Positions 1 to 59,382 of a stretch of 64,000 nucleotides of DNA are shown in pieces (within the stretch, counting starts at the first letter, position 1; each line of letters opens with the position of its first letter). The notes under the pieces are model-generated. The model was not told the origin of the DNA. It ran no database searches and was given only the letters and a program-made list of their open reading frames with translations. This stretch comes from Octopus sinensis (taxonomy: Eukaryota). The position numbers were made by a program, and so were the translations under genes. The stretch is taken from NCBI RefSeq assembly GCF_006345805.1, contig NC_043003.1:88164001-88228000 (forward strand), read 5' to 3'.

Positions 1-104
1 ATATACTAGGCTCGTGGTTGGAAATAAGGTAAAGGATGACTCATCTGAGAAAATAGCATTCCTCCACTGCTCTAGGGACTAATTCTGTAGATTTTTACTC
101 CACT

Positions 105-560
105 CTAAATGCTTTGCAATGTTTGTTTTTGAAAGTAGTGGTTTTCTGATTGCAGTCTGCCCATGAAATCCGGCTTTATGCAGCTCCCGGCAAACAGATT
201 TTGTAGAAACTGGGTTCTTGAGTTGGTCATTAAGCTCTGCAGTAATTTTGGGAGCTGTACTTTTGTGATCCTTTCTAACAATTCATGTAAGAGTCTGACA
301 GTCCCTATCTGAAAGCTTTGGTTTTCTTCCGGTGTTTTGTTTTGACAAGGTTTTTCCTTCTTTGTCAAAGGCTGTCATTACTTTTGAGACAGTACTTCTT
401 GATACACCAAACATTTTAGCTCTTTTCGTTACACTAGCGCCTGCAATATGAGCACCAACAATTTGACCTCTTTGAAAGTCCGATACATCTGTCATTTTAA
501 TGAATTTTAATTACCTTTTTCTGATGATATCCAAAAAGAAACAGTAATTTTAGCAAAACA
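105..560 (-). mobile_element. Tc1-like transposase remnant (N-terminal HTH)
   Basis: MTDVSDFQRGQIVGAHIAGASVTK...VSRSTVSKVM...GRKPKLSDRD; continues in a shifted frame. Confidence 0.8.
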
Positions 561-715
561 TATTAAGCAACATTAATAATAAATCCCAAAACATAAAAAT
601 AAACAACCTTTTGACGGTTTTAGAGATATTTAAAAAATTATGATGATTTGACGCTAGGTGTTTACATTAATTGATTCAACCCCTGTATCTATATATACAC
701 ACATATAAACATGTG

Positions 716-748
<33 letters not shown>

Positions 749-867
749 ATATGTATAATGTTTCTGTGCCAGTGTCACATAAAAAACAGCATCGAGCATG
801 GTCATTGCCAGTGCAGGCTGACTGGTCCCGTGCCGATGGCACATAAAAATCTCAAAGATGAAAATTA

Positions 868-1510
868 ACTTGATATGTGTACTTAGCACTCTACTGTATG
901 GAAGTGAGACTTGGACTACACACGCCAAGCGTGTCGCCTAATATCTTTCACCTGCGCTGCCTCCGGAAAATCCTCGGCATCAAGTGGCAGCATCATGTTC
1001 CCAACAAAGATGTCCACAAGCAAGCAGGAATACCAAAGCATGTTTGCACTCCTCACACAAAAACGTATGAGATGGCTTGGACATGTTAGCCCTATGGAAG
1101 ATGGCAGAATCCCCAAGGACATACTCTACGGAGAGCTTGCTAGGGGCACTAGGTCTGTGGGAAGACTGTTCTTATGATACAAGGATGTTAGCAAAAGGGA
1201 CATGAAGGCCTGCAACATCAATATTAGCAACTGGGAAGCAGTTGCCAGCAACTGTGGAGATTGGCAATGTACCGTAAAAGAGGGAACACAAAGGAGTGAC
1301 GAGAAATGGAAAAACAAGAAAGTATGACATTACAACCAGCCAGGCAAAGTCTTCGCTACATTTGCGGCACCTGCGAGAGGAAGTGTTTGTCCAGGATAGG
1401 ATTACACAGCCACAGCAGGAGATGTATTAGGACATGAAATGTAAAAGCTGGACTAGATTATTTTATGCGCAAATCCATTGTCCCACGAGACAAAAAGGAT
1501 GCCAACAACT
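868..1510 (+). mobile_element. RTE-clade LINE 3' fragment
   Basis: HLRCLRKILGIKWQHHVP and RMRWLGHVSxMEDGRIPKDILYGEL across frameshifts. Confidence 0.85.
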
Positions 1511-1729
1511 TTATTTATATATATTTATTAATATACATTTATTAATATAAAATATATATATAAGCATGAGTATATATACACACACAAATACAAATATATG
1601 TATACACACATATGACTATATATATATATATACACACACACACCTTACCAGATTGTGCTATTAACTAAGACATGGCTTGGGCCCATACTGGCTGAGACCT
1701 ATCAAAGTGATATACATACATATATATAT

Positions 1730-2460
1730 CAGGTCATCCCATAAGTTCTCTCCGAATTTTGAATAAAGAAATATCAAGTGATCAAATGTAAAATTTAATT
1801 GAAATTTAACCATCAATGTGCTTTCCTGATTATCTATGACTTCCTTCCATCTATTTACAAGCTTTTTATACCCATCAATGTAAAACTCTTTTGGTTTCAA
1901 ACCAAAGAACTCTGAAAAGTCAATTTCGACCTCCTCCTAGCTTGCAAGTTACATCCCCCAAATGATTCTGTAAACCATGAAACAAATGCTAGTCTCAAGG
2001 AGCAAGGTCAGGAGAATAAGGTGGATGAGGAATTTTTTCCCAACCAAGCTCTTCGATCTTCTGTGATGTGATCCTTGCAGTGTGGGGTCGCACACTGTCC
2101 TAATGAAACATCACTCCTTTTCGATTCACTAAAGTGGGTCTTCTTCAAAGCCTGGACCAAACGCTGCAATTGCTGACAGTGGGATTGAGCACTGATTGTT
2201 GCATTCGGTGGTAACAATTGAAAGTGAATTTCTCCTTTGCAATCCCACCAGATAGAGAGAAGAACCTTTTTTCCATGAAGTTCCTTTCTCGGTTGTGGTT
2301 GAGTTTTTTCCTTTTACCAAGCCAGTGTTTACAACGTTTAACATTTCGATAGAAGATAAATTTTTCATCACCAGTCACAAGTCTATCCAAAAAGAGTGAA
2401 ATGAGTTCGTACAAGTCCATACTTCATAGAATTCAAACTGTAATTACTGCCAAACGCAGT
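1730..2460 (-). mobile_element. mariner (DD34D-type) transposase remnant
   Basis: LVTGDEKFIFYRNVKR and EFYIDGYKKLVNRWKEVIDNQ; many stops and frameshifts. Confidence 0.85.
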
Positions 2461-3128
2461 CCTACCCCATATTAAAATACATTTGTTTGAAATTTGAAGG
2501 TTTTTCCATTATTTTGTCCAACCCCTGTATCAGATCTACAGTTATATTCTGAGGCTCTAGCTCTATGAAGTTATCTCCATCACTTGTAAAATATATAATG
2601 ACTAAAATGACCTTACAGTTGATTAGCCCTGATCCAGCACACATGATCAAAGGTGTATTCTTTGGTTTAAGATATAGTGTATCTAAGCCTACATTACTCA
2701 ATTTGGTAAAATGAGTTCTTTGGTCCATCAGATCACCTTATACCCTTCAAATATATGTGAAAATAATCATGCTATCATGTGGAAAGATAAGCCATTACAG
2801 TTTATAGGGACACCACTTTGGGAACCTATGTGAATACAGTGAAATTATTATGTACTGAAGCGTGTCCCTAGAGCTATTGGGACATAGGGAGTACTAAAAA
2901 AGACTTGATTTAATGTTGTGTAGCTTGGACAAAACAGAGTCATGGAGACCATCCATGTCTAAACTATATCTGCAAAAGGAACCAAATTCAGCTTTACAAG
3001 CTAATGATCCATTTACCAGCATCCCAGTGCTGCCATAGCTTAAAATAGTGAACTAACTCCTACCCTCCATTACTTATTTACAGCTAGGTGGATTGCACAA
3101 CATTTTAGCCTGTGATGTTTATACTTAC

Positions 3129-3246
3129 CACTCTTTAGCATTTCTTCATTCTGTACCTCATCATCAGCAAAGTCAGAAGATAATGGCCGAGACATCAATC
3201 GGATACTGGGTCCAATAATTATAGATTTAAGATCCCCAACTTTTAC
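3129..3246 (-). CDS. EIF2B5: eIF2B epsilon exon (VKVGDLKSIIIGPSIRLMSRPLSSDFADDEVQNEEMLKS)
   Basis: ctttctttttcAG acceptor, GTAAGT donor, 118 nt, phase 0 in and phase 1 out; VxVG start and acidic DFADDE segment. Confidence 0.85.
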
Positions 3247-6149: not shown

Positions 6150-6980
6150 CATATTTGTTTCCTCTGTGACAGTTTAAAAAAAAAGGGCACTTTGCAAAAC
6201 GAATGCATGAGGTTTTCAACTGATATCCTTTCGATTATTTTCGTTTTTGTAGCGAACACAGCCTACACACATTTTTCCTTCCATACATTGTTTCCACTTA
6301 ATGGAAGTCAATATTTTCTCTGTTGACATCCACCTCAGTTAATTTCTGTGCCTTCTGAAAGAAAAGTCCTCATGTAATTGAAATGCAATGTCAAGCCAGA
6401 ATTTCAAATGGTCGTAGTCCTTTGGTGGCAGAGGTACCTTGTAGCTTTCTACACAAACAATATATAAATTAACTATAGTTAGACATAATGCTGGAGATAC
6501 ATCGATCACCATACCTTATATCAGGATTCCAGTAGTTCCACAGTTGAGGAAGCTGCTTGCATTTCTGCAGTATCAGTTGGCTGCCACAGTGGATCAGGTC
6601 TTCCATGAATAGAAATTATGCGTTGAGCATATTTGTTTCCTCTGTGACAGTTTAAAAAAAAAACTTTTTGGTAAAAATAAAAATAAATAGTCCAATGGTT
6701 GAGCATTGGGAGGTAGACTGTATTGTGGACAAGTCTTTTCTGTGAAATTTAGAATTGTGGTTGATGTGGTAATCTTCAACCATGTTGCCACAGTGTTTTC
6801 AATATCATTTTCATCACTTTCATTTTTATCACTTTCATTACCAAAATCTTCCTCATCTAACAAAGATTCACAAATGTCAATATGGTTCGTCCAAAGAGAA
6901 ATCACTGTTGTTTTCATTTATATTTTGTACATCATCAAGAGTAAAACTATCGAAGTCAGAATTGCTACTTGCTGACGCCG
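6150..6980 (-). mobile_element. internally deleted piggyBac transposase remnant
   Basis: Acidic N-terminus with QPLDYLFLFLP (6594-6917); C-terminal HLKFWLDIAFQL and Cys-rich VCRLCS (about 6190-6460). Confidence 0.7.
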
Positions 6981-7957
6981 GATCATTTAAAAACTAAGAT
7001 ATACACTAACCAAGAAGTCTCAAAAATTTCACCCTATTTTTATTTGAATAATTGCTTAATGTAGCTGGAACTTGCAGACAAGAGAGACCCAGGAAGATAT
7101 ACGATGAAGTGATGAAGGCTGGCAGAGGGTTCTGAGCCTGATAGAAGAGATGACAAAGGACAAGAATCTCTGGCAATATGAGATTCTTGAAAAGACTTGC
7201 TGTCTTCAGTGAAACTGAATTTTGGAATTGTTATGTTTCGTGTTCTCCACCCATCTCATGCATTATGCTTTCCTCTCCCCCCAACTGGCTTCAGAAGATT
7301 ACCCAACCATGTCATATCTCTTTTGCATTCCTCCACTGCAACTGCATCATCATTATTATTCCTGCCTCTTGCTCCTCCACCCACTCTCTCTTCCGCATCC
7401 CTCTATCTTCCTCAACTCATGGTTCTACGTTCATCCATCCTTGCACCCTACCCAAATGGTAGTCTGCCTCCCACCCCTTCATTCTTCTTTCCATACAATC
7501 TTGCAAACCACCCACCCACTTCTACTCTGCTTGCGCCTTGTGGTGCTGCCTGGGCACCTCATTATCATTATCTGTCTCTTGCAGCTCATACTGATCATTT
7601 ACCCTCTCTCTCCCCCATATCTTCTATTAGATAACCATGTAAATTCTTCTAAAAGAACCTGATCTGCCCATGTGCCTTTTCATAGACATCTAATCCCCTA
7701 GTATGAACCTGACCTCTCCAAATTCCCCTAGAATTCATAGTCCTATGAACTGCATGGCAACCTCAATAGTGCAGGTGACATGAGAAAAAACAGCCAGTTC
7801 ATGCTGTTGTGGTTGGCACTGGGAAGGGCATTCAGCTGTAAAAACCATACCAAAGCAAACATTAGAGTATAAGGCAGTTCTTGGACATACCAGATCCACT
7901 CAAATTGTCCAACTCATGCCAACATGGAATATGGATGTTAAATGATGGTGATATATA

Positions 7958-9213
7958 CTGGGCTTTGCAAAAGACCTGTTACTCATTACAATGCTCTCAA
8001 CAAAGGACACAATAGTTTTGATGCAATTAGATATCTAAACACATTTTTATATGTTAAAACAATAAAAATGCGTTTAAATATTAATATTAATCTATGTGGT
8101 CACCCTTGGCAGTAAGCATGCGCTCCAGGTGAGACCTGAAGGCCACGCACACGTTATAGACCAAGTCCTTTCTCATGCTGGACCACACGTAGTTGATGGA
8201 GAAGTCCAGCTCATTGATGTTGCTGTGGTGGGCCTTGCCCTCGACATGCACCCACATACTGTATTCAAGGGAGTTGAAGTTGGGCAACTGCAGTCCTTCA
8301 TGTTCAACGTCAACCACTCGTCTGCAGCCTTGGGCACTATCCTGCTAAAAGACATAGTCTGCCTTCTTCATGATCTTTCTCAACCAGGGCAGGACTTTCG
8401 TGGCCAAAATGTCCCTGTAGTCAGCCGTTCTTGGACACATCAGACCCAGTCAAACTGTCCAACTCATGTAACAAGCTGTAAACCACACCAGCAGCATCTT
8501 CTTGTCATTCAAAGCCATGATGTTGAGCATCATCACAGATGCTGGGCACTTAGTTGTGGACATGTAGTGGACCTTGGAGACATCCTGGCTGAAGCTGATC
8601 ACATGGTCATTCTGCTTCTTGATGACCAGATTGACTGTGAAGGCCTTTCCATCAGAAAAAAACAAGAATTTGATTGCCACAACACTTCAAGTCATTGAGA
8701 AGGTAATGACAGCACTCCTGATGTTCACATATATGGTTGGTGAGCAGAGGCCTTTCCATGCACTTCAAGCTCTTGCCACACCCCTCCTTGATGGCCCTGG
8801 ACACTATGGCCACTGAGATGTTGTTCTCTGTGAGTACAGTCATTTTTGAGCTTCAGATCACTTTCAAAAGCCTTTCTTACAGCCAAACGGTTGACAACTT
8901 GAGGTCTGTCTGATTGAGGTCGATCTTTGAGGTCATTTTTGTTTTTGAACCTCTATTGGACTCTGTGGACAGTCATCTGGCTGACGTTGAGCCGCTTGGC
9001 AATGTTGGACTTGTTGCGGCATGCACACAAGAGAGCAGAGATCTTGATTCTTTTTGCTTCCAGCTTGATATACCTGCACACACATAATGGAAAACACGTT
9101 TTAATGACGTGCTGGAAAAGTAGAACTTTAAGTATGTTTGACAGTACTTTGTCTATCACACGTTAACCTCTGAAAAGATCAAAACCAAGTGTAACAGGAC
9201 TTTTGCAAAGCCT

Positions 9214-9215
<2 letters not shown>
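7958..9215 (-). mobile_element. Full-length decayed Tc1/mariner element, DD37D (maT)-like
   Basis: 25-bp TIRs CTGGGCTTTGCAAAAGACCTGTTAC (7958) and GTAACAGGACTTTTGCAAAGCCTGG (ends 9215), TA on the left; motifs FSDGKAFTV, KCPASVMML, NSLEYSMWVHVEGKA. Confidence 0.85.
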
Positions 9216-9255
<40 letters not shown>

Positions 9256-9363
9256 CATATACACACACACGATATGCATATACATATGTGAAAGAGTGTA
9301 TGTGTTTCTAACTAAATATTACACACGCACATAAAAGAGACTGTTAAATATTCTTCTACTTAC

Positions 9364-9509
9364 ATTCCATGAAAGAATGCTTCCTTCCTTGACAATGACA
9401 TTGTTTAGTAAAACAACACTGCTACATAAAATGGAGCTGTTGATCGAGCAGTTATCACCAACAATGATATTATCCCATAGATATGCTCCGTTAATCTGCA
9501 CATTTTTAC
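9364..9509 (-). CDS. EIF2B5: eIF2B epsilon exon, beta-helix (KNVQINGAYLWDNIIVGDNCSINSSILCSSVVLLNNVIVKEGSILSWN)
   Basis: ttattacAG acceptor, GTAAGT donor, 146 nt; YLW motif and hexapeptide repeats. Confidence 0.93.
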
Positions 9510-15233: not shown

Positions 15234-15334
15234 CAATTTTACAGTTGTTGCCAATAACAGAATCTGTAATCACAGAACCACTTTCAATAGTTGTGCCTTT
15301 TCCAACCAAAACATTTTGTATAAGCTTGCAACCA
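15234..15334 (-). CDS. EIF2B5: eIF2B epsilon exon, beta-helix (GCKLIQNVLVGKGTTIESGSVITDSVIGNNCKIG)
   Basis: ggcAG acceptor, GTAAGT donor, 101 nt; hexapeptide repeats. Confidence 0.93.
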
Positions 15335-17575: not shown

Positions 17576-17704
17576 CGTTCCAGAGTAACAGCAGAACATT
17601 GGTAAGTATTGTAGCGGCCATAGGAAACAAAATTATCTTTGTTTTTGGCAGGAATAAGGATGTCAGGTACCAATGGGTAGCACCATCTCTGAAGAATATC
17701 TCGA
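17576..17704 (-). CDS. EIF2B5: eIF2B epsilon exon (RDILQRWCYPLVPDILIPAKNKDNFVSYGRYNTYQCSAVTLER)
   Basis: atgttacAG acceptor, GTCAGT donor, 129 nt; DxxxRWxYPLxP motif. Confidence 0.93.
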
Positions 17705-20386: not shown

Positions 20387-20472
20387 CTGACTGTGTCATA
20401 CATGTGAAGATTTGATACACGGACAGCATAGCTTTCTTCGGCAATGTGGATGTGTATAGAGTTTCCAGTAAT
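20387..20472 (-). CDS. EIF2B5: eIF2B epsilon exon ([29 protein letters not shown])
   Basis: tattttacAG acceptor, GTTGGT donor, 86 nt; matches human [28 protein letters not shown]. Confidence 0.93.
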
Positions 20473-22454: not shown

Positions 22455-23528
22455 CCCTTTCGTTACTATATTTCTGACCAAAATACACCCCTTATGTGTT
22501 TCAATTAATTTCTAACATAATCATATATTTAGTCTGGTTTCATTAAACAACTATAACTTTTTTATTTATCAATATATTAACGTGAATTTTGGAAGATAAT
22601 TTAATGAAATGTTCTCAACCAATTCTATACTATAATTTTTGTCACAAAGTGACTCTAATTGCAGGTAGATACAGGTAAATTCAACAAAATATAAAATTAT
22701 TAAAGTTTTGTTCAAACATCGCTATAGAAAATGGGTTATTTAGCTAATATTCAATTGGGTATACAACAAAATTTTACAATAGAATTTGTTATTCTGGGTA
22801 ACTTTCTGATACCCATAATATTTATGGCAAAATAGTCTTAATTTCATTTAAGGTTATGGGAAACCACTAACTATCCTTTCTTTCGTTTTGTTTACATTTA
22901 GCGTAACGGTTCGTTTCCGCCGTAATGATTTCAAATAGGCTTATTTGAAAAAGTAAAAAGAAATAGTCTAAGGCTTTACTCTCCTGGGAAAGTCTGTGGC
23001 TTGGTCCAGTTTCTTCAGAAAAATCACCGAAAGAAACAGTTTTTAAATTTTCACTCCATTCAGGTGCCAATTCATTTTCTTTATCGCTGTCGGAGCTCTC
23101 GGATTCACTGTTTTCACTTTCGGAAAATGAAACATCAGATTCATTATCAAATACCACGTGCTTTTTCTTTTCAGTCATAGAGTTAGATTTATGAAGGTCT
23201 TCAGTAGAAAATCCTTCGAATTCTGACTCGCTGCTTGATATAATGAAATTTGTATCCATTTTTTGTCAGAATTACAAATTTTGAAAACACAATAGGAACA
23301 AATTTCGGAAAAAAATCTCCCAAAATTCACGGAATTAAAATTACACTTCGATTTTTGTACAAAACTGTAGTTGAACTCTTTATAAAGTATAATACGTGTT
23401 TTCACGAATGTACTAAAGAGATTTGCTCTGATATTCTCATTTAAATATGAATAGGTAAATATGGGCGGCTTTGGGCGGTTTGGTCACATTAACCAAAATT
23501 TTTTTCGGGCGGTTTGGTAATGAAAGGG
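22455..23528 (-). mobile_element. non-autonomous piggyBac with both TIRs and TTAA target duplication
   Basis: TTAA(22451-54)+CCCTTTCGTTAC ... GTAATGAAAGGG+TTAA(23529-32); retains transposase N-terminus (acidic tract, KALDYFFLLF, AETNRYA). Confidence 0.9.
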
Positions 23529-25292
23529 TTAATGATCAAAGAACATTTATGTTGCAAGTGTTGCAAAGTAGAGCTACTGAAATGTTTAGGGAGTCGATTA
23601 CGGATAATATAGTTGTTTTACATGAAAGTGAAATTTCTTGTCAGAAACAGCCACATAAATGGTGTAAGGAAATTGAAGGAAGATGTTGAAACTTCCCCTC
23701 TGTGAGTTTATTTTTTTCAAAAGCAAAGGGAGCTATTTTTTCAGAGAGAAAAGCTAACAAAAGCCCCTTTCTTCTATCTTCCCACATAGCGTGCACATAA
23801 ACTAACAGCGAATGCTGCATAAAGTTAAAATGGTATGGAGCTTCCTGAAAGATACATACAGCTTTTGCTAGTGGAAGCAAAACTCTTATTTAAAGGTTGA
23901 TTCTTTGGGACGAATCATATGTGAGTGTTTAAAAAATGCTTGAATGACAATGCTAAAACCTATTTGAAACAATGGACAGTAGTCGAAATATCATAATAGA
24001 TGAGTAAATAAGCATCTTAAAGTGAAACAACAGTATCAACAAATATAAGTGAGGGAAGGGAATATCATCTTTCAACTAACTCACCTTGCCAAAGTTTAAT
24101 GCAGTTTAAATATGTAGGTTAAGATAGTTTGGTATTAGATATTCATTGTGTACAGTGTTCTTTGTTAAGTGAATCACTGTTGTAGGTCCACAGCAGAAAT
24201 AAATAGAGAAAATCCTTTCACTTTTATATAAAAAAAAGATTAAAAAAGTATGGAAGACTCAACATAAAAAACAAACTATGTCCATTTATGTCCAGTTACA
24301 CAGGAGCCCTGGGCAAAATGTTATAGTGCATGACCATCGTTGGGACATAAATAATGTATGTATAAAATTTGGTAACACATATACTGTAATTTATATATAC
24401 CAGATATATATTTTACTGTGTATTTATGTATGCATGTGGGTTTATTTCATTTAGTTGATGGTATGTGTATTTCATGTTCTAGTTTTCTTAAAAGATAAAT
24501 TCTAGTATTTCATTCTATTTTACCTTTATTGTTACACCTATCTTACATGTAAGTTCAACTGATAATCTAGTAAGGCACATAATAACAATGATGATGGCAA
24601 CTTAAAAATAGAGAACTCAGTTATTTTACTAAATCTCCTCCAAATTCATAATTTCATCATAGTTACTGCTTTTACATCTATTTTTCTTTGCTGACATGGG
24701 TTGGATGAGATATGGTATTCTATAGTTGGATGCCCTTACTAATGCCAACCCTCACTTGTTGTCAAGTAAGGTACTTTATTATTCACCACTATGTCAAACT
24801 GTCAAGCTGCAGGACGAACGTGGAGCCCAAATGGTGGTATCAATGTGAAAATGTGTAAAGACAAATGCACCACATACACACACCCTTATATATATACAGG
24901 CACACATACATATATGCATACACACACACACGTATACACACATACGCACACAAGATGCTTGTGTACAATCATCTACAGTTGCCATCAGTCAGATTTCACA
25001 TGAGCCATTGGTCAACTATATATACAAGATACTAACAAAAGTGCCACACAGCAGGAGTGAACCTAAAAGCAAATGTTTGTGAAGTGAACTTCCCAACCAC
25101 ACAGTGATGCCTGCACCTATATAATTTTATAATTAATTGAAATACATGGATAAAGAACATACATTATCATCATCATTGTTTAATGGAAAACGGACGTAAA
25201 ACGATGATGATGTATGTTCTTAGAAAAATAATGAAAAAAAGTTAATCATTCAGGAGTTGCTAAGTAAATATATGTTTGTTAGAAGTAATTAA

Positions 25293-25548: not shown

Positions 25549-25710
25549 CTCTTCATTGACAAGGATTCCTTTGATCAAGTCATCTCGTGTTTGGTAATCA
25601 AAATCATCTGTGAACATCTGTGGCACAAACTGGGAGCAGACAGCAATTTGGCAGTCCAATAAATTGTAGTGGATGTTTGACACTTTAGGTCTTTTCTTAC
25701 TGATAGCAGT
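25549..25710 (-). CDS. EIF2B5: eIF2B epsilon exon ([54 protein letters not shown])
   Basis: catttcAG acceptor, GTAAGT donor, 162 nt; matches human [40 protein letters not shown]. Confidence 0.95.
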
Positions 25711-31331: not shown

Positions 31332-33241
31332 AAAAGATGTTTACTTGTTTAGAAGTATGTTTTAAAAACTGTCATTCATAAGCATTGAATCAATGTCTTT
31401 CTTTAGGCTGGTTTGACTACGAGAGAGAAATTCTTTGTCTCCTATATAAAATACACTTGTGTGTGTGTGTTCACTTTTTATGCAAAAACAGCTGGGCAAA
31501 TTGCTTTCATACTTGGAATGCATGAATAGTTTGACCTCAGATACATAATAGGGTCTTCAGTTTATTTTTTTCATTAAAAATCAATTGATATTGCTTTATA
31601 TATATATGATTCACTTCTTTAAAAAGGTTTTTCAGCGTCACTTTCTGGTATTGACATAGCAACAGCAAAATTTTCCCTTTTCATTTCTCTTACTTTCTAT
31701 TTTAATACTTTCATAAGTTTTAATTCACTATTTGCAAACAACTACGATAAATTACTGAATGAAATAAAACCATGGGAGGAGCCTTTTTGGTGCAAAAAAA
31801 AAGTTGTAAATATTTTCAGAGGAAAAGGTGTACGATTCAAAGGGGATTTGGCTGTTGTTTCTAGCACATCCCAAACTACCCTCCATTTTCACTCTTGCAT
31901 CGTCCCATATATTGATGTTTTTTTTCAATATTTTTCTCCCATTAAACACACTTTATGGAATGATGATGCCGAAGTAACGCACGTGTTGTCCATTGGTGGG
32001 ACATAAGCAACAAAAACAAAAATTTGTAATTTAAATTTTTACCCCGACCTCAATCAAGCAAAGCTCTGTGTGTGTGTGTGTGTGTGTGTGTCTAAGAAAA
32101 AACATTTTCTAACAGAAAAGTATGCTATTAAAATGAATTGTCATTTACATAGCTCTTTTATTAAATCACTGAATAAATGCCAGCAATTACCTCCTCAGGC
32201 TCTCCAACGTTTTAAATTATAAACAGAAACAATCAGAGGCTGGGAGTGAGGTTGCAAAATAATCATAATTTTTCATTTTTTTTTTTTATAGAAGAAATGT
32301 ATTTACGGGGAGAAAAATATCGAAAAACTTTAATACATTGGACAGTGAGAAAGAAACAAGGAGGGTTGCCTTAGGACATGCTAGAAACAACAGCCAAATC
32401 TCCCTTAAATCACTCACTTTTTCCTTTAAAAACATCAACAATTCTTTTAATATTTTTCTACTGAAAAGGCTCCTGCCATGGCTTTCAAGCACAAAAAAAA
32501 TTAATCAAAATTGGTCTGGAGTGGGATGATGAGGGGACAGGTTTCTACAAAAAAATTTTTCAAAGCTTTTTTTTTCATAAAAAGATACCCCTCCACATCA
32601 TTCCAAAGGTGTGTGTATGTGTGACAGGGATGAGCCATTCATACTGGTCATCCTTTTTGCTAGAAGAAGATCCGGTATGGTCTTATATGCTACACCACTG
32701 GTTTTCAATTCATATTAATCAAATTAATATTCAATTTTTCACCCTTATTATGTGTGTGTGTGTATTAGCAATTCGTATACAATTGCATCAATGACTTGAA
32801 CTTGAATAAGTGGTTTCACATAAATGGGGATACATTAAAAAGGTTTGTTGTTATTATTATTACTGTTTGACTATTGTAATCACGTTTGTTGATTCCTCAC
32901 CAAGGAAATGTTGTTGTGTTGCATTTGTTAAATAATTGTAAACCGTAACCCTCCCGCTTTCGGAGAAGGGGCTTTCGTTATTGTTTCAAAATTGAATTGT
33001 GTCCCTGTTTGGGGAACTTGACAATATTTTCACCGTCTTTACAGAAGCATTTTTGTTAAAATGCCTTCCATAGAAGAAAGTTCAAAAATGAATTTCACTG
33101 CAGCCGTACACTTCTATACAAGATCCAATTGATCGAAATTGCAAGAGACGGGCCTACAATTCCAGTCTGTTATATATTTTGAGTATTGTTATCACTAGCG
33201 ATATCAAGATATAACTTTCTATTTTGTATTTTGTGTAGATG

Positions 33242-33277
<36 letters not shown>

Positions 33278-33423
33278 TGTACATGTAATATGTACACATA
33301 TATATATATGCACATATATACATGCATAATATATCTACCCATACACACACACACACACACACATACATAGGGGCAGGTGTGGCTGTGTGGTAACAAACTA
33401 CGTTCAAAGATACTGTACTTGAT

Positions 33424-34620
33424 ATGGGCGGTAGTGCCTTGCCGGTCTATGGCCTACCTTCAACAAACCGGGAAGGCACAAACACTCTGTCTTCACATTT
33501 GCTGCGTGAGACATGTTTTAATGTTGATGAGCTTGCCGAGTACATAGCCGACAATGAGCCAAAGCTCCTTCCAGAACCCAAGTTCGCTTACAACTCCGTT
33601 GTTAATTCAGTCCGGGCCAAAACTGGGAGAATTTTTTTCCTGGACGCTCCTGAGGGCACTGGGAAAACTTTTCTCAACAAATTAATATTGGCTGAGATTA
33701 GGCGAACACAAGGCATTGCCCTAGCTGTGGAATCATTTGGAATTGCGGCTACTTTGTTGCCAGGCAGCAGGACAGCTCACTCCACTTTCAAGCTTCCGCT
33801 TGACTTAGCGAAGACTGAGACACCAACTTGCAACATCAGTAACAGCTCCGATCAGGCAGAAGTCTTCAGACGATGCAAGCTTATCGTTTGGGATGAATGC
33901 ATGATGGCCCACAGACGTGCTCTTGAGGCACTAGATAGATCTCTCAGAGACATCAAACAAGCTTCAGCTCCCATGGGAGGCATAACACTTCTTCTTTCAG
34001 GGGACTTCTGACAAACACTTCCCGTTATTCCCAAAAGGACTAGAACTGATGCAGTAAGTGCGTGTCTTAAGTCATCCACATTGTCGCCACTGGTGAAGAC
34101 TCTCAAACTTCACACCAATATGCGTGCTCATATGTGACGTAATATCACATCAGCAGTATTTTCTCACACCCTCCTTGCACTTGGCGAAGGCAAAATACCA
34201 GGGGATGAAAATGGTAATATTGCCATCGATTCCATTTGTACCATTGTTAAAACGCCTTCTGATCTCAGACATGCAGTGTTCCCAGATCTACAAGCTAATT
34301 ATCAGAATATGGATTGGATTGGCCAAAGGGCTATTCTGGCCCCGAGGAATAAAACTGCTCACCAAATTAATGATGAAATGCTAAAACTCATTCCTGGGGA
34401 TGTCTATGTATATAAGTCTATCGATACAACTCCTGACCCAGAGGACGTCATCAACTATCCAATAGAGGTACTCAATTCCTTTGAGCCCCCCGGACTACCA
34501 CCACACATTCTCAAAATTAAAGTTGGTGCCCCTATAATGCTCATTAGAAATTTTGTTCCCCCAAAACAATGCAATGGCACACGTTTGATCGTTAAGTCCT
34601 TATCTCCCACCGTAAACTTA
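33424..34620 (+). mobile_element. Helitron PIF1-like helicase remnant
   Basis: FFLDAPEGTGKT, GIAATLLPGSRTAHSTFKLPL, LIVWDEC, LLSGDF* (premature stop), RAILAPRN, GLPPHILKIKVGAPIMLIRN..CNGTRL. Confidence 0.9.
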
Positions 34621-35320
34621 TATCAATATTTGCCTGAATAATCATCATAATTCAGTGCAATCATTAACAGTACTTTCAAACAATTCAGCCCCGAGCATTG
34701 CCGGGCAATTCTGCTAGTACACTATAATGGTTATAACTACAATTGTCTCGTTTCTATCCTACATCATCATTGTCACCATTTTTAACATCCACCTTTTGTT
34801 GAGGCAGATTTTCTAAACCTGGATACCTTTTCTGTCACCAATAGTGAGAAATCAAATGGCCATCTACTGCCTAACGTTCAAGAGTATCTTATTAATCTAC
34901 CAGTTACTGTAACCAATTCCTAACTAACTAATGTTTCGGTATTCATTTGAATTTAAAGGGCTAAAAGTATGTGTGCATGGTGGTTTTTGACATGTGCAAT
35001 GGACATCACCATGATTTTGATAACCACTTTTCCAGTCATGTATAGGTCAGACAGAATTTGTTAAATCAAATTTTCTATGGCCCTTTCTGTGTCCAAACAA
35101 GGTAATATTTCATCTTAGGCAGACATGTTTTCATGGGAAATGAATGACAACACTTAGACAACAAAGCCCAGATATTATGAAATATGTAGCTATAAGGCTA
35201 TAGTAATAAACAAACAAAAAATGGTTTTAACATAGAAAATATTTAAATAAATGGATAAACAGTGTTAAATAGTTCAGTCATTCATTCTAAAGTGTGAAAG
35301 ACAAAAAAATTGCTACTTAC

Positions 35321-35489
35321 AGTTGAAATTGTAGTGGTATTGTTGACCTTTTGGTAATGTCGTACTCTTTGGGTGGAACTGTCAACAGATATAACAAAGT
35401 CATCATCAGGACTGCGGGCTGGGTGTCCTGGCTTTGCAGTTTTCATTATTAATGTCATAACAGCAAGTTTATTGGCTTCACGAGTTTTT
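35321..35489 (-). CDS. EIF2B5: eIF2B epsilon exon (KTREANKLAVMTLIMKTAKPGHPARSPDDDFVISVDSSTQRVRHYQKVNNTTTIST)
   Basis: Translated by hand (not in the ORF track); tgtttcAG acceptor, GTAAGT donor, 169 nt; matches human [39 protein letters not shown]. Confidence 0.93.
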
Positions 35490-43737: not shown

Positions 43738-46115
43738 TGTGTACAGTGCTCAGGTGCACTACAACTCATCTAAAGTGTATATATAATCAGGTGTAGTTTC
43801 GACGGATTTCGGGAAGCATGAGGGCCTTAAAGGATGCAGTGTCATGGCAGTCAACAACTGATGCAGGCAGTTTATTCCACGCTTCAGCAACCCTGAGCGT
43901 GAAAAAATGTTTCCGAAAGTCATGGGAGCTGTGCTGTTTTCTGACTTTGTAGGCATGTCCACGTGTGTTAGACACATGGAGATCAAAAAGGTGTTCAGTG
44001 TTGTTGTTGGTGAGGTGGTTGATAACCTTGTGGGTGTTTACCAAGTCCGTCGCTAGACGCCGGAGCTTCAGTGAATCCATGCCCAGGGAAACAAGGCGCT
44101 CAGAATATGGTAGGTGTCTGATGGAGGGTATGCGTTTGGTTGCACGTCTCTGGACAGATTCCAGGAGGTCAATGTTCTGAGCAAGATAGGGATTCCAAAC
44201 TGATGATGCGAATTCCAAGTGTGGTCGTACCATAGCTGTATACAGTTTTAAATAGATGGCTGGAGAGCGGCTAACAAAAGTCTTGCTGAGTGATGCCAAG
44301 ACACCCTCGGCCTTCTTGACAATTTTAGAGATATGCTTTGTCCAACGCAAATCACTGCTGACAGTGATGCCTAGGTCACGCTCGCAAGAGGATTTCTTGA
44401 AATCAGTGTTGTGGAGGGAGTATGTGGACGCAGGGTTTTTTCTCCCAAAATGCATGGTGGTACACTTGTCCACAGCCAGTTTCAGTTGCCAGTCTGTGAT
44501 CCATTGCTGCATTGTGTCTAGGTCTGATTGCAGGAAAGAGTTGTAGACATCAGGATCAGTCCTCTTGATTTCAAGGTACAGCTTGATGTCGTCTGCATAT
44601 TTCAATACTGTGGCATTCTTTAAATTGGCATCTATGTCATTAATGTATGCCACAAACAGGAGGGGACCAAGGACAGATCCCTGTGGTACACCCGATGACA
44701 TCTCATATGGTGTAGAGTGCTGTCCTAGAACTGTGACTACCTCCTTTCGGCTGAGGATGAAGGATTTCAACCAGTTAAAAAGGTCATCCCCCACACCCAT
44801 TGCAGAGAGTTTCACCATAAGCCTTTTGTGTGGCACAGAGTTGAAAGCCTTAGCAAAGTCAAGGTAGACAACATCCACCCATGAGCCACTGTCAGTGATC
44901 TGAGTAATGTCCTCAAGGAACTCGACAAGCTGGTCACTGCAGCTGGAGTTAGGGACAAATCCATATTGTGAGGGTCGGATGAGACTGTGAGAGCTCCAGA
45001 AGTTCCAGAGTGTTTCTCTGACACACGATTCCATCAGTTTTGCAATACAGCTAGTGAGACTGACTGGGCGATAGTTGACAGGTGATGTGCGGTCACCCTT
45101 TTTGAACAGAGGAATGACACTGGCAGTTTTCCACTGCTCCGGAGTAGCACCATTGTTGAGACAGTACTGGAAGAAAATAGAAAGCTGGTGTAAAAGGAAG
45201 TGCCTGCCACGTTTGAGAAGCAGGTATGTAACTCCATCGAGACCAGGGGAGGCATAGTTGCGCTTATTTTGAAGGTGACGTCGCAGCATTGCAGGTGTAA
45301 ATTCCATAGTTGTTATGGAGTTTGCTGTTAGTGATGGTGAAGATGGTACATTTTGACTTTCGACAGTGAATATGTTTGCATAGCACTCGGCAATGAGTTC
45401 TGCGCATTCCTTGGGGTCGTCAGTGATCTGGTTCGTGTGAGGGTTGCGAAGAGGGCCCACTGGAGAGTGAGGTCTCTGCTTTGAATGCACATATTTCCAG
45501 AAAACCTTGCTGTCAGGATTGGCTGCTATGCACTGTTCAAATTCAAGCACTTCATTTTTTGTCACTTGCTTGAGATGGTTGGAGGATTTATTCCGCTTCT
45601 TCCTGTTGGTGTCTGATTTATGCAACTTGTATTCCTGTTCAGCAGTCCGACGTTCCTTCCTGGCAAGTCGGACCGCTGAAGTTTCCCAAATTGCCCTTTT
45701 GGGGCGGTTCTTCTTTTTTGTTTACGTGGCACTGATGCTGCACATGCTGCCCATATTGAGTCCAGGATACTCTGGAGTATAGTATTCACATCTCCAGAGT
45801 TGTAGAATTCACGCCAGTTTGGGTGCTGTAGTTCAGTGTGGTACAGGTTCCAATCTGCTCTCTTCCAATCGAAGGAAGCAGATTGGAGATGGTTCAGGTG
45901 TTTGTTGCCCGCAAGAGCCAGATTGGCGATGATCATAGCATGATCAGAGTCACCTAGAGGTTCCTCCGTAGTGCAATTGATAACCGCTTCAGGAGTTGTG
46001 GTGAAGAGCAGGTCCAAGGTGTTGTCGCCTCTTGTTGGAGAGGTGACTACTTGTGACCAGTTTGAGTCCAGCACAAGCTCAACAAAATCGTTTGCACTCA
46101 ACAAAATCGTTTGCA
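43710..46115 (-). mobile_element. 5'-truncated, near-intact CR1-group LINE (C-terminal part of the AP endonuclease plus complete RT)
   Basis: 612-aa ORF 43787-45625 (YRPVSLTS, VYLDFAKAF, GVPQGSVLGP, YADD); upstream SPTRGDNTLDLLFT and SDH in another frame; 3' UTR ends in (ATT)n. Confidence 0.95.
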
Positions 46116-46760
46116 TATATGTATATACATATATACATGCACACACATCACAGTATGTTACCTGGGATTTTCATTGCATGTTTGGAATATTTTGAGGTCT
46201 TAAATTATACTTTTATGTGTCTTAGCAATACATATGCTTGGTTTTGTTTAATTCACTAATTCATTTTTCTGTAGTACAATATTATCATAAACATGTGTCA
46301 CTGTGACTAACAAGTTGATTGGAAATTATGATAGTATAATAATAATAAAAATCTTTTCTACTATAGGCACAAGGCCTGAAATTTTAGGGGAGGGGGCTAG
46401 TGAATTACATCAACCCCAAATGAATGGAAGGCAAAGTTGATCTTGACTGAATTTAACTTAAAAATGTAAAGCCAGAATAAATGCTGCTAAGCATTATCCC
46501 AAACATTACATTATATTCTTAACTAACAAGAGACAGTCAAAAATGAAAATCTGCACAAGTACCCTCATAAAATTTTCCACTGCCCACTTTGAGAAGCACT
46601 GACATAAAGAAACAGAAATAAAAGCCAAAATATAACATGAACAAAATAAAATGAATAGAAAGCAAAACATTTTTAAAACAAAATTTGTGTGTAAAAAACC
46701 CAGCAAAAACAAGAGAAAGATGAAAAAAAGATTAAAATAAAACCTGCTCCATTGACTTAC

Positions 46761-46943
46761 TTGTGAATTTGTACAATATCTGTCAGCTTCAAGTTGGCAA
46801 CAGTGTCTCCAAATAACAAAACAAAATCATTACGAATCAGTGCTCGATTGTCAATATCTCGCATTGCATCCCCAAGAGAGTAACAGCCTTTCAAGATGAC
46901 TACAGTCACAGTCAGTGAAGATTTCTTATACCAACCTGCATCT
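46761..46943 (-). CDS. EIF2B5: eIF2B epsilon exon (DAGWYKK...SLGDAMRDIDNRALIRNDFVLLFGDTVANLKLTDIVQIHK)
   Basis: tttgtttAG acceptor, GTAAGT donor, 183 nt; SLGDxxRDxD and DFxLxxGD motifs. Confidence 0.95.
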
Positions 46944-50720: not shown

Positions 50721-50845
50721 CGTAGGTAATCATCAATTTGGTTGAAATGGCTACTGCAAAAGACAAAGATTTCTTCAATCCCTGCTGCAGCAAGAAATTC
50801 AAGACTATACTCAATCAATGGTATATTTACTAATGGCAACAAAAC
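50721..50845 (-). CDS. EIF2B5: eIF2B epsilon exon (VLLPLVNIPLIEYSLEFLAAAGIEEIFVFCSSHFNQIDDYLR)
   Basis: ttttaacAG acceptor, GTATGT donor, 125 nt; matches human [30 protein letters not shown]. Confidence 0.95.
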
Positions 50846-51293
50846 CTGTTAAAAGACACAAAAAATAAAAAATTATGTATCATTACTAGTGTTTCTAACA
50901 CTTAAAGTATATCTCATTTATTCTTAATCAAAATGAATTTTGACACTTGACAAATGGTGTCCTTCAACTGTATAAACATTCTGTAAGATTCATGTGGGTG
51001 CGTGTGTTTGCATTTTATGCACAAAGCAGCATGAATCAGAAGAAATGGAAACATTTAAATATAAAACCTTACTGTAGGTTAAATAAGAGTTTAAACACAT
51101 TCTTTCTTATAGATGTGGGGAGTTTTCTGATGAATCATTTCATTGTTTGCTAATTACTTAGCAGGTTTACTTTGCTAATCAATAGCATAGAATGATCAGC
51201 TGCTACATAAAGATGCTGTAAATCAGATTAGTACAGTAATGCTACATTTATTCTTAAACAAGAATATTATTTAGAGTGACTTCAAAGTTTTGG

Positions 51294-53303
51294 CCAGGAG
51301 GTGTTTCGCGTTGCAAGACAGTGTGTGAGAGAGAATTGTGATGTGGTAGGAGAGAAGTGTGTTCGCATGGAAGATGGTTCACTTGCGCTAAATGAGGATG
51401 CAAAGAGAGAGGCTTGGAGATGCCACTATGAAAGGTTGCTGAATAAAGAAAATGAATGGGATAAAGAGAGTCTGCCGAATGTTGACCCAACAGAGGGACC
51501 AGCTATCAGGGTTGATAGTTCATTGGTAGTTAAGGCAATTAGAAGCATGAAAACAGGGAAAGCCCCAGGCCCATCAGGTATCACTGCAGAGATGCTCAAA
51601 ATATCTGGTAGTGTCGGCTATAGCCTAGTCACCCGTATAGTTAATCAGGTGATACATGAAGGAGTCATACCCAATGACTGGTGTAGCAGCATAATAGTCA
51701 ACTGCTACAAAGGTAAAGGTGATGCCCTAGATACAAATAATTACAGAGGTATCAAGCTGTTGGATCAGGTGATGAAGGTTACAGAGAGGGTCATAAGCCA
51801 ACTAATAAGAGAGAGAGTTAGTTTAGATGAGATGCAGTTTGGGTTCGTGCCAGGGAAAAGTACCACTGATGCTATATTCCTGGTAAGGCAGCTGCAGGAG
51901 AAATACCTAGCCAAAGATAAGCCCCTGTACCTGGCTTTTGTTGACATGGAGAAAGCCTTCGACAGGGTCCCCCCGATCCCTCATCTGGTGGTCAATGAGG
52001 AAACTAGGGATAGATGAATGGTTAGTGAGAGCTGTGCAAGCCATGTACAGGGATGCTGCTAGTAAGGTGAGGGTTGGCAACGAGTACAGTGAAGAATTCC
52101 GGGTAGAGGTAGGGGTCCACCAAGGCTCAGTCCTCAGCCCCCTCCTATTTATCATAGTCCTCCAGGCAATAACGGAGGAATTCAAGACAGGATGCCCCTG
52201 GGAGCTCCTCTATGCTGATGACCTTGCTCTAATTGCTGAGTCTCTATCAGAACTGGAGGAGAAGTTTCAGGTGTGGAAGTAAGGTTTAGAATCGAAGGGC
52301 CTTAGAGTCAATCTAGCTAAAACCAAAGTCGTAATAAGTAGGAAGGTAGACAAATCACAAACGCCTTCAGGTAGATGGCCCTGCTCGATCTGTAGAAAAG
52401 GTGTAGGTAGAAACTCTACAAGATGCACCAAGTGTAAGCTATGGACACATAAGAGGTGCAGCAATGTCAAAGGAAGGCTAACTAGGAAGATGGAATTTGG
52501 ATGTGGCAGATGCTCGGGAGCATTAACATCTGAAAAACCTGGGACAAGGTGGTGAAGCACGACCTTCAAACTTTAGGTCTCACCAAGGAAATGACTAGAG
52601 ACCGAGACCTATGGAAGTATGCTGTGCGTGAGAAGACCCAGCAAGACCAGTGAGAACAGTTAAAATCAAACCAAATCAACATCAGTGGAAATTGCAGCCG
52701 TGGTTAAGCGAACCATCCGATCGTTTGTCCGTTGCCAGCCTTGCCTGGCCCCCTTGCCGTTGGCACGTAAAAGCACCATCCGCTCGTGTCCGTTGCCAGC
52801 CTGGCCTGGGCCCTGTGCCGGTAGCACGTAAAAGCACCATCCGCTCGTGTCCATTGCCAGCCTCGCCTGGCCCCCGTGCTGGTAGCACATAAAAGCACCA
52901 TCCGTTTGTGTCCGTTGCCAGCCTCGCCTGGCCCCCGTGCCGTTGGCGTGTAAAAGCACTGTCCGCTCGTGTCCGTTGCCAGCCTCGCCTGGCCCCCGTG
53001 CCGGTAGCACGTAAAAGCACCATCCGTTCGTGTCCGTTGCCAGCCTCGCCTGGCCCCCGTGCCAGTGGCACGAAAAGACACCATCCGTTCGTGGCCGTTT
53101 GCCAGCTCTGTCTGGCACCTGTGCAGGTGGCACATAAAAAGCACCCACTACACTCACGGAGTGGTTGGCGTTAGGAAGGGCATCCAGCCGTAGAAACACT
53201 GCCAAATCTGACTGGGCCTGATGAAGCCTTCCAGCTTCACAGACCCCAGTTAAACCGTCCAACCCATGCTAGCATGGAAAACGGACGCTAGATGATGATG
53301 ATG
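51294..53303 (+). mobile_element. Young 5'-truncated RTE LINE (RT, 3' UTR, (GAT)n tail)
   Basis: NYRGIKLLD, QFGFVPGKSTTDAIF, AFVDMEKAFDRVP, GVHQGSVLSPLLF, LYADDL; one frameshift near 51975, stop at 52280, internal deletion near 52545. Confidence 0.93.
52712..53145. repeat. About 7 x 61-bp GC-rich tandem repeat in the RTE 3' UTR
   Basis: accatccg-type anchors at 52712, 52775, 52836, 52897, 52958, 53019 and 53080; no unique spacers. Confidence 0.92.
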
Positions 53304-53817
53304 ATAAGCCATCATTGTACTACAATATATTGAAGTTAACCTTGGCTGTATATAGTCTCCTGCTGACTTAAATTTTTCCTTGTGTATGTGCGTTTGAGTA
53401 GAGTGGTAACTAGGTTGTAGGGTGGGTTATGAGAGAGAGAGAGGTGTTCTGGAGAAATTGTTAGTGATAAAATTTGGGTTATGTTATTGTTTACAATTTG
53501 TTGTATGTAGAACTTTGCAAGTGTGTGTATGTTTAGGTGTGTCCCTTTCAGGTCATGGGATTGTTTTTAGTGGTTCACAAAAAGTAGGTCTAAGATATGC
53601 CAGTCTCTTCCTCTTAAGCCTCTTGATTCCTCAAGGAACATAGCACCACTTTGTGGTTTCTATAACAGGTATGTTTTTTATTAGAGAGTTGTTAGCACAA
53701 TGCTAAACCCCAACCTGGAGGGCTAGTGGAGTACTCTTAAACTGCTCTCTACCCTTTGACCTGTCTGGATTGGGTGGCCCTATAAGGAGACAAATCTCCC
53801 GTCAGCATAGCTCTTAT

Positions 53818-54190
53818 GGAGTGGCTGTGTGGTAAGTAGCTTGCTTACCAACCACATTGTTCTGGGTTCAGCCCCACTTCATGGCACCTTGAGCAAGTAT
53901 CTTCTACTAGAGCCTCAGGCAGACCAAAGCCTTCTCAGTGGGAAGCCCGTCATATATGTATATACATATATGTATGTGTGTGAGTGTGTGTGTTAGCGTG
54001 TCAGTGTTTGTCTCCCCAATGTTGTTTGACAACCAATGCTAGTCTGTTTACATCCCCGTAGCTTAGCAGTGTGCCAAAAGGGATTGATAGAATGAGGAAT
54101 AGGCTTACAAGGAATGAGTCCTCGGGTCTATTTCCTCAACTAAAGGTGGTGCTCTAGCATGGCCACAGTCAACTCAAACAAATCAGAGAA
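53818..54190 (+). mobile_element. tRNA-derived SINE (family A)
   Basis: gtggctgtgtggtaagtagcttgc...ctgggttcagcccc head; tail aaggtggtgctctagcatggccacagtc. Confidence 0.8.
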
Positions 54191-54404
54191 TAAAAGAATA
54201 TATATATATATATATAGTACAAAATTAGAGAAAGGAGAAATATACTTAAATCAGTAAAACATCAACTATCCGATGATACTCAATCCATACTTTAATACAC
54301 CATTACATATGAGTAAAGGCAATACATAAAATGAAATGAGATATACAGTAATAGTAAAAAGATAAAGAGATATAAGTAAAAAATTTTTTTCAAATATAAT
54401 ATGC

Positions 54405-54540
54405 AAATAAATCAAAACTGACAGCTGTTTCGGCAGTGAGGACAGTCATACCTCATTTAACCTATAAGCCATAAAGGCAGGTATAAATGAGGCATTAACA
54501 AGGATGCCCCACGGCCTCTTCAGAGAATTAAATTAAATTT
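54405..54540 (-). ncRNA. Type I hammerhead ribozyme candidate (Penelope-like element terminus)
   Basis: Minus strand CUGAAGA (54523-17), stem II GGCCGUGGGG/CCUCACUGCC, GAAAC-AGCU-GUC cleavage triplet (54422-20); stem I imperfect. Confidence 0.7.
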
Positions 54541-54867
54541 GTTATAATAGTGAAAAATATTATACAATCATATACATATAAATATAAAAATATAAAAAAA
54601 TAAAATATAAAAACTTATACATCATAAAGCTACACTTATATAATATACTACACATTTGTACAAAAAAGGAAAGCAAACAGAACAAAATAAAACAAAATAT
54701 ATAATAGTGTATATATTAATATCAATAAGTACCGATATTATACATATTTGGCTAGTAGTTTTTTATATATAAAAAAAAGGCTAACATATATGGAGATGGA
54801 AAATAATAAATAAATCCGTGGTATAGTTCATAAGATACTAAAGCTATAAAAGTTAATAAAAATTACT

Positions 54868-54931
<64 letters not shown>

Positions 54932-56624
54932 TATAATAAAAAAATAGATACAGTTAAGTTAGCACCAAGTCCATCCTTACAAGATCGAAATATATATATA
55001 TATATATAGTGAGAATTTACAAACAAGATGAAGACGGGTGTGTAAACAACACACAGATGTATTAGTTTAACGCTCGGAAAGTGAAAAAGTCTTTTACGTT
55101 TCGAGCCTATGCTCTTTGACAGAAAGGAACACAATATGTCTATAACCTAGCTGGTATACCCGGTAATTCCTGGAGTTACATATATTTATATATATATATA
55201 TATTATATATATATATATAATATATATATATATATATGTTCTATTGAAATGCCTTATTACTCTGATATATGAAAGCAATTTCATTATAACTGTCACAAAA
55301 GGTTCATTTTCCATGACAAAAGAATACAAAAAACTGTCAGCTAGAGGAGGGAGAGATTACTGGAGGTTTGTGACAGAGGTTGTCGGAGGTTGGCAAGAGG
55401 CAAAGATTTATTCTGCTTAGCGATGGTATCTGAGAAATGTATAACTGCTGTCATTTACAGAAAGACTATTGTTTTACTGAGGAAAGCGCTGTTGAAGTGT
55501 TAAGTGAAATTGATCAATCGAGGATCAAATCCATGCTATGCCTGCATGAAACCACTACAAATACTTAGTGGAACAAAAAATTTATCTACTGCCATGGAGA
55601 AAATGTAACTGTAAAAATGCAGAATTATCGGAGTTATAGGCATTCAAAAAAGTATGTATGTATAGAAATGTATGAATGAAGACTTTAAGGTTTAAGATTC
55701 AAATTAAGGAAGTACAATAATCATGTTTAGCAGTTCAAGACCGTGAGTAGTGAAATGCAGAATTAGGTCGGCTGTTCCCGAAACCAAATATTGATTGCTT
55801 CGCTAAAATCTGCAGGTGGTATGGGTTATTTCCCTTGGGTTGCTTAAATAAAATATTAGTAATATGTAATAGACAGAAGGATCCATTGGAGGACCCTATT
55901 ATCAATTTTTTTCAACAATCTATGTATGTCATGAGGTTTCCAGACATGATACTGTCTGCAAAAATTAAAAATAGGCAACACAGAAAATCTATATTCAAAG
56001 CAATCGAACATAGACAATAAACTTTATAGACAATTTTTATAAGATTTTTAGAGTATATACAGTAATTGGTAGTTATACAAATTATTTAATTTATAGAGTT
56101 TTGAGTATAATTTATTGTAGTTAATTTAAATTATAAATTTTATAGTATATAGTGATTATATTGTCTAATAGTGACTTTGTTCTCTTTATCTATTATAGCT
56201 AAAATATAGTCGTATTTTCCATTGATAATATTAATTCGTAATTTTCATTGATAAAAAATATTCGTAGTTTTCATTGTTAAAAGAATTTTTCCATCTATTT
56301 TATTCGATTTCTGTTAATAACATAATTCCACAAGTTTTCTTCTAAACGCTTAAAAGAGGTTTTCCGTTTTGAAATTTTAGTTAATGACAGGGTTTTTGAA
56401 AGCTAAGTAAACCTTTTCTATTCAAGATTTTTAAAGATATTTTAAGAAGTTTTATTGTATTGTATTGTATACTATATAACTACTGATTGTTAATTTGATT
56501 CTATAATTACTTAGTTGTTCATGATATGTATTTAATTATTAGATTATAACTGTACATAAGATATTACTTAGCCAATGAGATATATAGATCGTAAAATAGT
56601 TATACGGTTCTTTTAATATATATT

Positions 56625-58307: not shown

Positions 58308-58309
<2 letters not shown>
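56625..58309 (-). mobile_element. 5'-truncated CR1-group LINE (RT)
   Basis: 400-aa ORF 57059-58261 (GPDG, YRPISLTS, IYLDFAKAFDKVDH, VPQGTVLGP, FADD); stop at 57059, C-terminus continues at 56657-57040; (TGAAA)n tail. Confidence 0.92.
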
Positions 58310-58346
<37 letters not shown>

Positions 58347-58352
58347 TGAAAT

Positions 58353-58402
<50 letters not shown>

Positions 58403-58562: not shown

Positions 58563-58603
<41 letters not shown>

Positions 58604-59323: not shown

Positions 59324-59382
<59 letters not shown>

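Follow-up and report, generated by a model that had tools for sequence, protein, structure and literature searches.

Aspartate in the NF motif of octopus eIF2B-epsilon: an ancient and probably tolerated substitution of the cephalopod lineage

The epsilon subunit of eIF2B carries a short Asn-Phe (NF) motif that penetrates into eIF2-gamma and places Asn263 of the human protein near the opened switch 1, where Arg75 of eIF2-gamma is reported to pair electrostatically with Asp262 of eIF2B-epsilon. The usual description of this motif as conserved and essential rests on mutants in which Asn was changed to Lys and Phe to Leu. In yeast Gcd6, both growth and activity suffer severely from N249K or F250L, the former being lethal and leaving about 16% of exchange activity, and human N263K is in use as a catalytically inactive mutant. 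We have investigated a stretch of 64,000 nucleotides from Octopus sinensis (contig NC_043003.1, positions 88,164,001 to 88,228,000), hereafter the window, in which the same motif is encoded as Asp-Phe. This locus thus raises the question of whether the Asp is a genuine feature of a functional gene, where in evolution it originated and whether it signals a protein with altered properties.

The gene containing the motif is located on the minus strand, where nine exons between 50845 and 3129, all bounded by AG/GT splice sites and separated by introns of 2.2-11.3 kb, join into an open frame of 406 residues (Table 1). Exons were located by tblastn, with a human probe that was used for this purpose only, and their boundaries were set by eye and with a script. 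In the annotated octopus protein P0151 (O. vulgaris CAI9726196.1, identical to O. sinensis XP_029639282.1), the same 406 residues occur without any difference at 41-446. This protein belongs to the same 90% cluster as the best match in a HMMER search of 1.84 billion cluster representatives, Octopus bimaculoides XP_052825505.1, which is 99% identical to the window protein and differs from it at four residues. A query of 83 residues from two exons had returned no homologues, which reflects a limitation of the word index and not absence, and the full-length query worked. With the first 367 residues aligning to human eIF2B-epsilon 66-432 at E=2e-98 (S. pombe 2e-90; S. cerevisiae 1e-78), in contrast to only 3e-18 for the paralogous gamma subunit of S. 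pombe, and with a W2/HEAT domain in the full-length protein, the gene clearly encodes epsilon. The beta-helix domain is recognized in residues 272-372 of the window fragment (PF25084 LbH_EIF2B, 117.6 bits at a cut-off of 54). The nucleotidyl-transferase-like domain (PF00483) stays under the cut-off in the truncated fragment (E=8.6e-4) and figures among the domains listed for the complete octopus protein. The latter aligns with human residues 41-718 (E=3e-148), carries the W2/HEAT catalytic domain (PF02020), which is encoded by exons outside the window, and keeps the catalytic glutamate (LILEINSLK in octopus, LVLEINSLK in human; Glu577, yeast Glu569). The nucleotidyl-transferase-like domain, the beta-helix and the W2/HEAT domain with its catalytic Glu are thus all in place, and of the Asn-Phe motif the Phe is kept with Asp replacing Asn. 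This replacement does not affect the assignment, because about 11% of undoubted orthologues are also devoid of the Asn. By tblastn we found neither exon 1 (residues 1-40) at 50846-64000, with human, degenerate N-terminal and O. bimaculoides probes, nor exons following residue 446 at 1-3128, with human and O. bimaculoides probes. As judged from these comparisons, the locus is a set of nine internal exons of a single functional eIF2B-epsilon (EIF2B5/GCD6) orthologue.

Table 1. Location of exons, motif codons and transposon-related frames in the window.
Feature	Position	Strand	Remarks
Exon A	50721..50845	-	encodes octopus residues 41-82; nucleotidyl-transferase-like domain begins
Exon B	46761..46943	-	183 nt; left out in frame by O. 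sinensis isoform X3 as annotated
Exon C	35321..35489	-	splice sites, protein match
Exon D (TAISKK...LVNEE)	25549..25710	-	162 nt, phase 0/0; AG acceptor, GTAAGT donor; carries motif
Asp234 codon GAT	25606..25608	-	equivalent of human Asp262
Asp235 codon GAT (octopus numbering)	25603..25605	-	position of human Asn263, yeast Asn249; alignment and P0151 match
Phe236 codon TTT	25600..25602	-	human Phe264, conserved Phe of the NF motif
Exon E (ITGNSIHIHIAEESYAVRVSNLHMYDTV)	20387..20472	-	splice sites, protein match
Exon F	17576..17704	-	splice sites, protein match
Exon G	15234..15334	-	start of left-handed beta-helix (I-patch) domain
Exon H	9364..9509	-	beta-helix domain
Exon I (VKVGDLKS...EEMLKS)	3129..3246	-	last eIF2B-epsilon exon within the window
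RVT_1 long frame	43787-46146	-	E=4e-37 (43787-45625); endonuclease-RT fragment 45562-46146
RVT_1 long frame	57059-58261	-	E=5e-30
Reverse-transcriptase fragment, weaker	51301-52017	+	
Reverse-transcriptase fragment, weaker	62429-63169	-	
PIF1-like helicase frame	33424-34011	+	E=4e-43; C-D intron, opposite strand to gene
PIF1 2B-domain frame	34276-34641	+	E=5e-13; C-D intron

Several features of the gene and its surroundings were observed alongside. Isoform X3 of O. sinensis, as annotated (P0153, 624 residues), omits exactly exon B, an in-frame loss of 61 residues of the nucleotidyl-transferase-like domain. An older O. bimaculoides model (P0155, 425 residues) reads through the donor of exon I into the intron (…KSGKYKHYRLKYAIHLAVNK); the window contains the same read-through frame at about 3066-3129 on the minus strand, with a stop shortly after, and this extension is likely an annotation artefact or a case of intron retention. 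The introns are full of transposon remnants, which comprise LINE reverse transcriptases and a PIF1-type helicase. The reverse-transcriptase frames are LINE-type retroelements in or upstream of the eIF2B-epsilon introns, and the two PIF1-like frames are probably the remnant of a Helitron-type or Pif1-derived element that was broken by a frame change. Two acidic and serine-rich frames on the minus strand (22867-23259 and 6597-6993; …SESENSESESSDSDKENE…) resemble by eye the N-terminal parts of some transposases, with no Pfam match found for the frame at 22867-23259. Dinucleotide microsatellites (CA/TG, TA) at about 24790-25035, 33150-33410, 9160-9320 and 650-940 generate open frames of His-Thr or Tyr-Ile repeats in introns, and Rfam and tRNA scans revealed no RNA genes in the window.

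The motif itself is located in exon D, where positions 25600-25605 of the plus strand read AAAATC, with the reverse complement GAT TTT encoding Asp-Phe in the context FTDDFDYQ. In a phmmer search of all PDB chains, this exon aligns to residues 239-281 of human eIF2B-epsilon (E about 1e-14), with N263 and F264 opposite the octopus D and F and 11 out of a run of 12 residues identical. The initial annotation, which had reported Asp-Phe in place of Asn-Phe, is exact in its coordinates, reading and human numbering, though it does not name the minus strand. Its description of well-conserved flanks is reflected in the alignment, and the literature agrees with its account of the NF motif, which corresponds to Asn263-Phe264 in human and Asn249/Phe250 in yeast, contacts eIF2-gamma and loses activity when substituted. 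The motif Phe, the invariant Asp that follows and the acidic residue that precedes are all intact in octopus, and the alignment of exon D to the human protein shows no burst of other changes around the motif. The same FTDDFDYQ is found in all four gene models of octopods (O. bimaculoides, O. vulgaris, O. sinensis and Argonauta hians). In the independent assembly of Argonauta the genomic exon reads ACT GAC GAC TTT GAT, where the Asp is encoded by GAC, synonymous to the GAT of octopus. A rough Nei-Gojobori comparison of 390 codons between Octopus and Argonauta gave a dN of 0.063 and a dS of 0.84, and their ratio of about 0.075 indicates that eIF2B-epsilon is under strong purifying selection. The suggestion of a diverging paralog is not supported by these data: the window protein is identical to the single annotated eIF2B-epsilon of O. 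vulgaris and O. sinensis, it aligns to its human counterpart over the full length with conservation of Glu577, and it shows the same low ratio.

To which lineage the Asp belongs is illustrated by its distribution in animals. Of the 122 sequences covered by a named search, for which the octopus protein of full length was the query, 116 have NF and 6 have DF, and a second search seeded with a transcript cluster described below (P0002) added 71 new sequences, 69 with NF and 2 with NY. DF is thus not common across invertebrates. NF is present in the chiton Liolophura, in about 10 bivalves (several Mytilus, two Crassostrea, Saccostrea, Mizuhopecten, Sinanodonta and Potamilus) and in about 11 gastropods (Gigantopelta, Pomacea, Lymnaea, Biomphalaria, Physella, Aplysia, two Elysia, Plakobranchus, Arion and Bradybaena). 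It is equally found in the brachiopod Lingula, in annelids, nemerteans, arthropods, echinoderms, hemichordates, amphioxus, vertebrates, cnidarians and sponges. Among animals, DF occurs in three species of Octopus, in Argonauta, in the Logan transcript clusters P0002 and P0211 and in the ark clam Tegillarca granosa, the only sampled non-cephalopod mollusc that does not keep NF. In Tegillarca, the sequence is again FTDDFDYQ with a genomic GAT codon (L008 6374-6502; GCA_029721355.1 CM056604.1), the exon ends as in octopus, and the position of the intron 3' of exon D is common to Octopus, Argonauta and Tegillarca. The closest relatives of this clam, Mytilus and Crassostrea, have NF.

In a neighbour-joining tree of 31 sequences (666 columns, 300 bootstraps, calculated with our own script), Octopus and Argonauta group with P0002 and P0211 at 100% bootstrap, and Tegillarca is placed among pteriomorph bivalves, with 67% identity to Mytilus. 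The two transcript clusters share 83% identity between them and about 49% with the octopods, which are their best named matches; most simply, they would represent non-octopod cephalopods. In this sister clade, which is known from transcripts, the codon is GAT in all six assemblies examined. Since the chiton, bivalves, gastropods, brachiopod, annelids and nemerteans carry Asn, the Asp is derived in the cephalopod lineage. The most parsimonious scenario would have NF as the ancestral state of molluscs, with a replacement of Asn by Asp once on the stem of the sampled cephalopods and again in Tegillarca, and with the Asp kept since that stem while half of the protein changed. As far as can be read from these genomes and transcripts, the genomic Asp became fixed in the cephalopod lineage long ago. 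The proposal of a lineage-specific change has thus held with respect to a derived residue in cephalopods, given the Asn of other sampled molluscs save Tegillarca and the NF found through animals to sponges. The change is not unique, since Tegillarca, a yeast and protists have acquired DF or EF independently.

The independent cases emerged from a survey across eukaryotes, for which we aligned the best 150 representatives, each standing for one cluster at 50% identity. The column of Asn263 contains N in 134 of these 150, D in 6, S in 3, H and E in 2 each, and Q, G and I in 1 each, with neither K nor R in any of them. In the same representatives, the column of Phe264 shows 143 F, 6 Y and 1 C, that of Asp265 shows 149 D, and residue 262 is acidic in 149 of 150 (97 D, 52 E). 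The preservation of Asn in 89% of the 150 best representatives implies that the position is evidently under real constraint. DF is carried by the oomycete Globisporangium polare and the amoebozoan Clydonella sp., EF by the yeast Diutina rugosa, SF by Trichoderma and Ascosphaera, GF by Polychaeton and IF by Serendipita, the occurrence of S or G at this position being found in Pezizomycotina. With the exception of two pairs, identities among the carriers of Asp or Glu amount to only 30-41%, and the sequences nearest to them have NF, which implies independent origins. An acidic residue arose at this position at least seven times, in the cephalopod clade, Tegillarca, the oomycete, the amoebozoan, the yeast and two further lineages. 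Such repeated origin in organisms with a single essential eIF2B-epsilon favours tolerance.

We thus consider the cephalopod Asp to be probably a tolerated, conservative substitution of the NF motif. Asp would replace Asn isosterically and the motif would keep working, with the Phe anchor and the following Asp unchanged in octopus. The new carboxylate would adjoin Asp234, the equivalent of Asp262, within an acidic patch by which switch 1 of eIF2-gamma, the loop that bears the arginine, is kept open as GDP is released. With a carboxylate placed beside Asp262, whose partner is an arginine, Asp should therefore be compatible with the contact. We rely on Asp262 only, because residue 258 is Gln in the human PDB sequence. 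Exchange activity would in this case be retained, and the extra negative charge would suit the switch-1 contact and might even strengthen it. We infer that the lethal replacement of Asn by Lys, in turn, sets like charge against the arginine of eIF2-gamma, which fits the natural spectrum, where D, E, S, H, Q and G are found and K or R never, among the 150 best representatives. A shift in the exchange rate or in the sensitivity to phospho-eIF2 may nevertheless accompany the substitution. We found no mention of N263D, N249D or a DF variant in the literature that we searched, where Lys is the only tested substitution of the Asn.

An adaptive role was the first suggestion made for this locus. In such a scenario, the added charge would strengthen or weaken the capture of switch 1 of eIF2-gamma and confer on cephalopod eIF2B a different basal exchange rate or stress set-point, which may possibly be accompanied by a compensating change in eIF2-gamma. 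The location of the residue at a catalytically relevant contact, the presence of Asn in about 89% of the 150 best representatives and the retention of DF across a deep split, with octopods and their sister clade sharing about 49% identity, would all be in line with such retuning. However, retention is equally expected if Asp is about equivalent to Asn and reverse mutation is rare. Moreover, the same or a similar change recurs in unrelated organisms of very different physiology (clam, oomycete, amoeba, yeast), and the surroundings of the motif lack any burst of changes. The at least seven independent origins of Asp or Glu argue for tolerance instead of a retuned eIF2B or integrated stress response, and we consider adaptive retuning, which in a modest form ranks next, rather unlikely. 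The recurrence could in principle itself be a sign of selection, if in cephalopods, the clam, the oomycete, the amoebozoan and the yeast a convergent gain of charge had made the eIF2B-epsilon core bind the switch-1 arginine more tightly. If true, the tighter binding would speed up nucleotide exchange at its basal level, and the integrated stress response of cephalopods would thereby have a different threshold, a proposition that we regard as quite improbable.

It also appears very improbable that the Asp is the hard-wired product of RNA editing, with an ancestral AAT or AAC edited from A to I in coleoid mRNA and later replaced by a genomic G. The change from A to G at the first codon position is indeed the one that editing mimics, and in coleoids a replacement by G is more frequent for edited than for unedited adenines (PMC7703385), which lends the idea some plausibility. 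However, A-to-G is also an ordinary transition, Tegillarca and several protists have made the same substitution without recoding of the coleoid type, and we found no lineage that combines a genomic A with edited transcripts. The position does not qualify as a recoding site, with G in the genomes of Octopus and Argonauta and no A found within the sampled cephalopod clade. Between the transcript assemblies from the sister clade, C/T differences prevail, without an excess of A/G: five assemblies (P0002/P0156) show five C/T differences and one A/G difference in their coding sequence, which look like ordinary polymorphism. The A/G difference, at position 1552 of L001 compared to L002-L005, exchanges GGA and GAA (Gly/Glu) in an acidic linker and may be a polymorphism or an editing site. 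With G in octopod genomes, GAC in Argonauta and the same change in a clam, the hard-wired A-to-I change raised by the initial annotation is a formal possibility only. Finally, that the assembly or the base call is in error at the Asp codon, or that the gene is a pseudogene or a redundant, diverging paralog beside a copy with NF, is barely conceivable, since, although the window covers one assembly only and exon 1 and the C-terminal exons are located outside, four octopod genome annotations agree on Asp, three of them from further independent genomes that speak against the assembly error considered at the outset, the nine exons are all open with canonical splice sites, the ratio of dN to dS is 0.075 and no second octopod eIF2B-epsilon-like protein was found among the 150 best representatives or 120 named matches, where a copy of 50-90% identity may hide.

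Collectively, the Asp gives octopus a probably conservative version of a known motif, and the gene that carries it is an ordinary housekeeping gene that had been annotated before. Its relevance concerns the definition of the motif, whose Asn is replaceable in nature by Asp, Glu, Ser, His, Gln and Gly in about one in nine lineages. The requirement is thereby refined to the Phe and the flanking acidic residues and not the amide, and the Asp of an entire cephalopod clade is very old. The exchange of Asn for Asp is thus a convenient way to probe the switch-1 contact by mutagenesis, and it is by itself no sign of an altered stress response in octopus.

Human EIF2B5 (PDB 6CAJ, 6O81, 6K71) shares with the octopus protein the order of domains, an end-to-end alignment, Glu577 and the flanks of the motif. 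It differs in carrying Asn263 where octopus has Asp, and its identity over the part contained in the window is only about 44%. In yeast Gcd6, N249K and F250L affect the same motif position and define its importance for exchange activity. However, N249K introduces a long basic side chain, whereas the Asp of octopus is isosteric and acidic. The eIF2B-gamma subunit has the nucleotidyl-transferase-like and beta-helix architecture in common with the octopus protein but is non-catalytic, is devoid of a W2/HEAT domain and is by far the weaker match (3e-18 compared to 2e-98). Further parallels are found in natural variants without Asn, where the DF of Tegillarca granosa, Globisporangium polare and Clydonella sp. 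had origins separate from that of octopus, and among these the Asp of cephalopods is the sole case in the survey that spans a whole deep animal clade.
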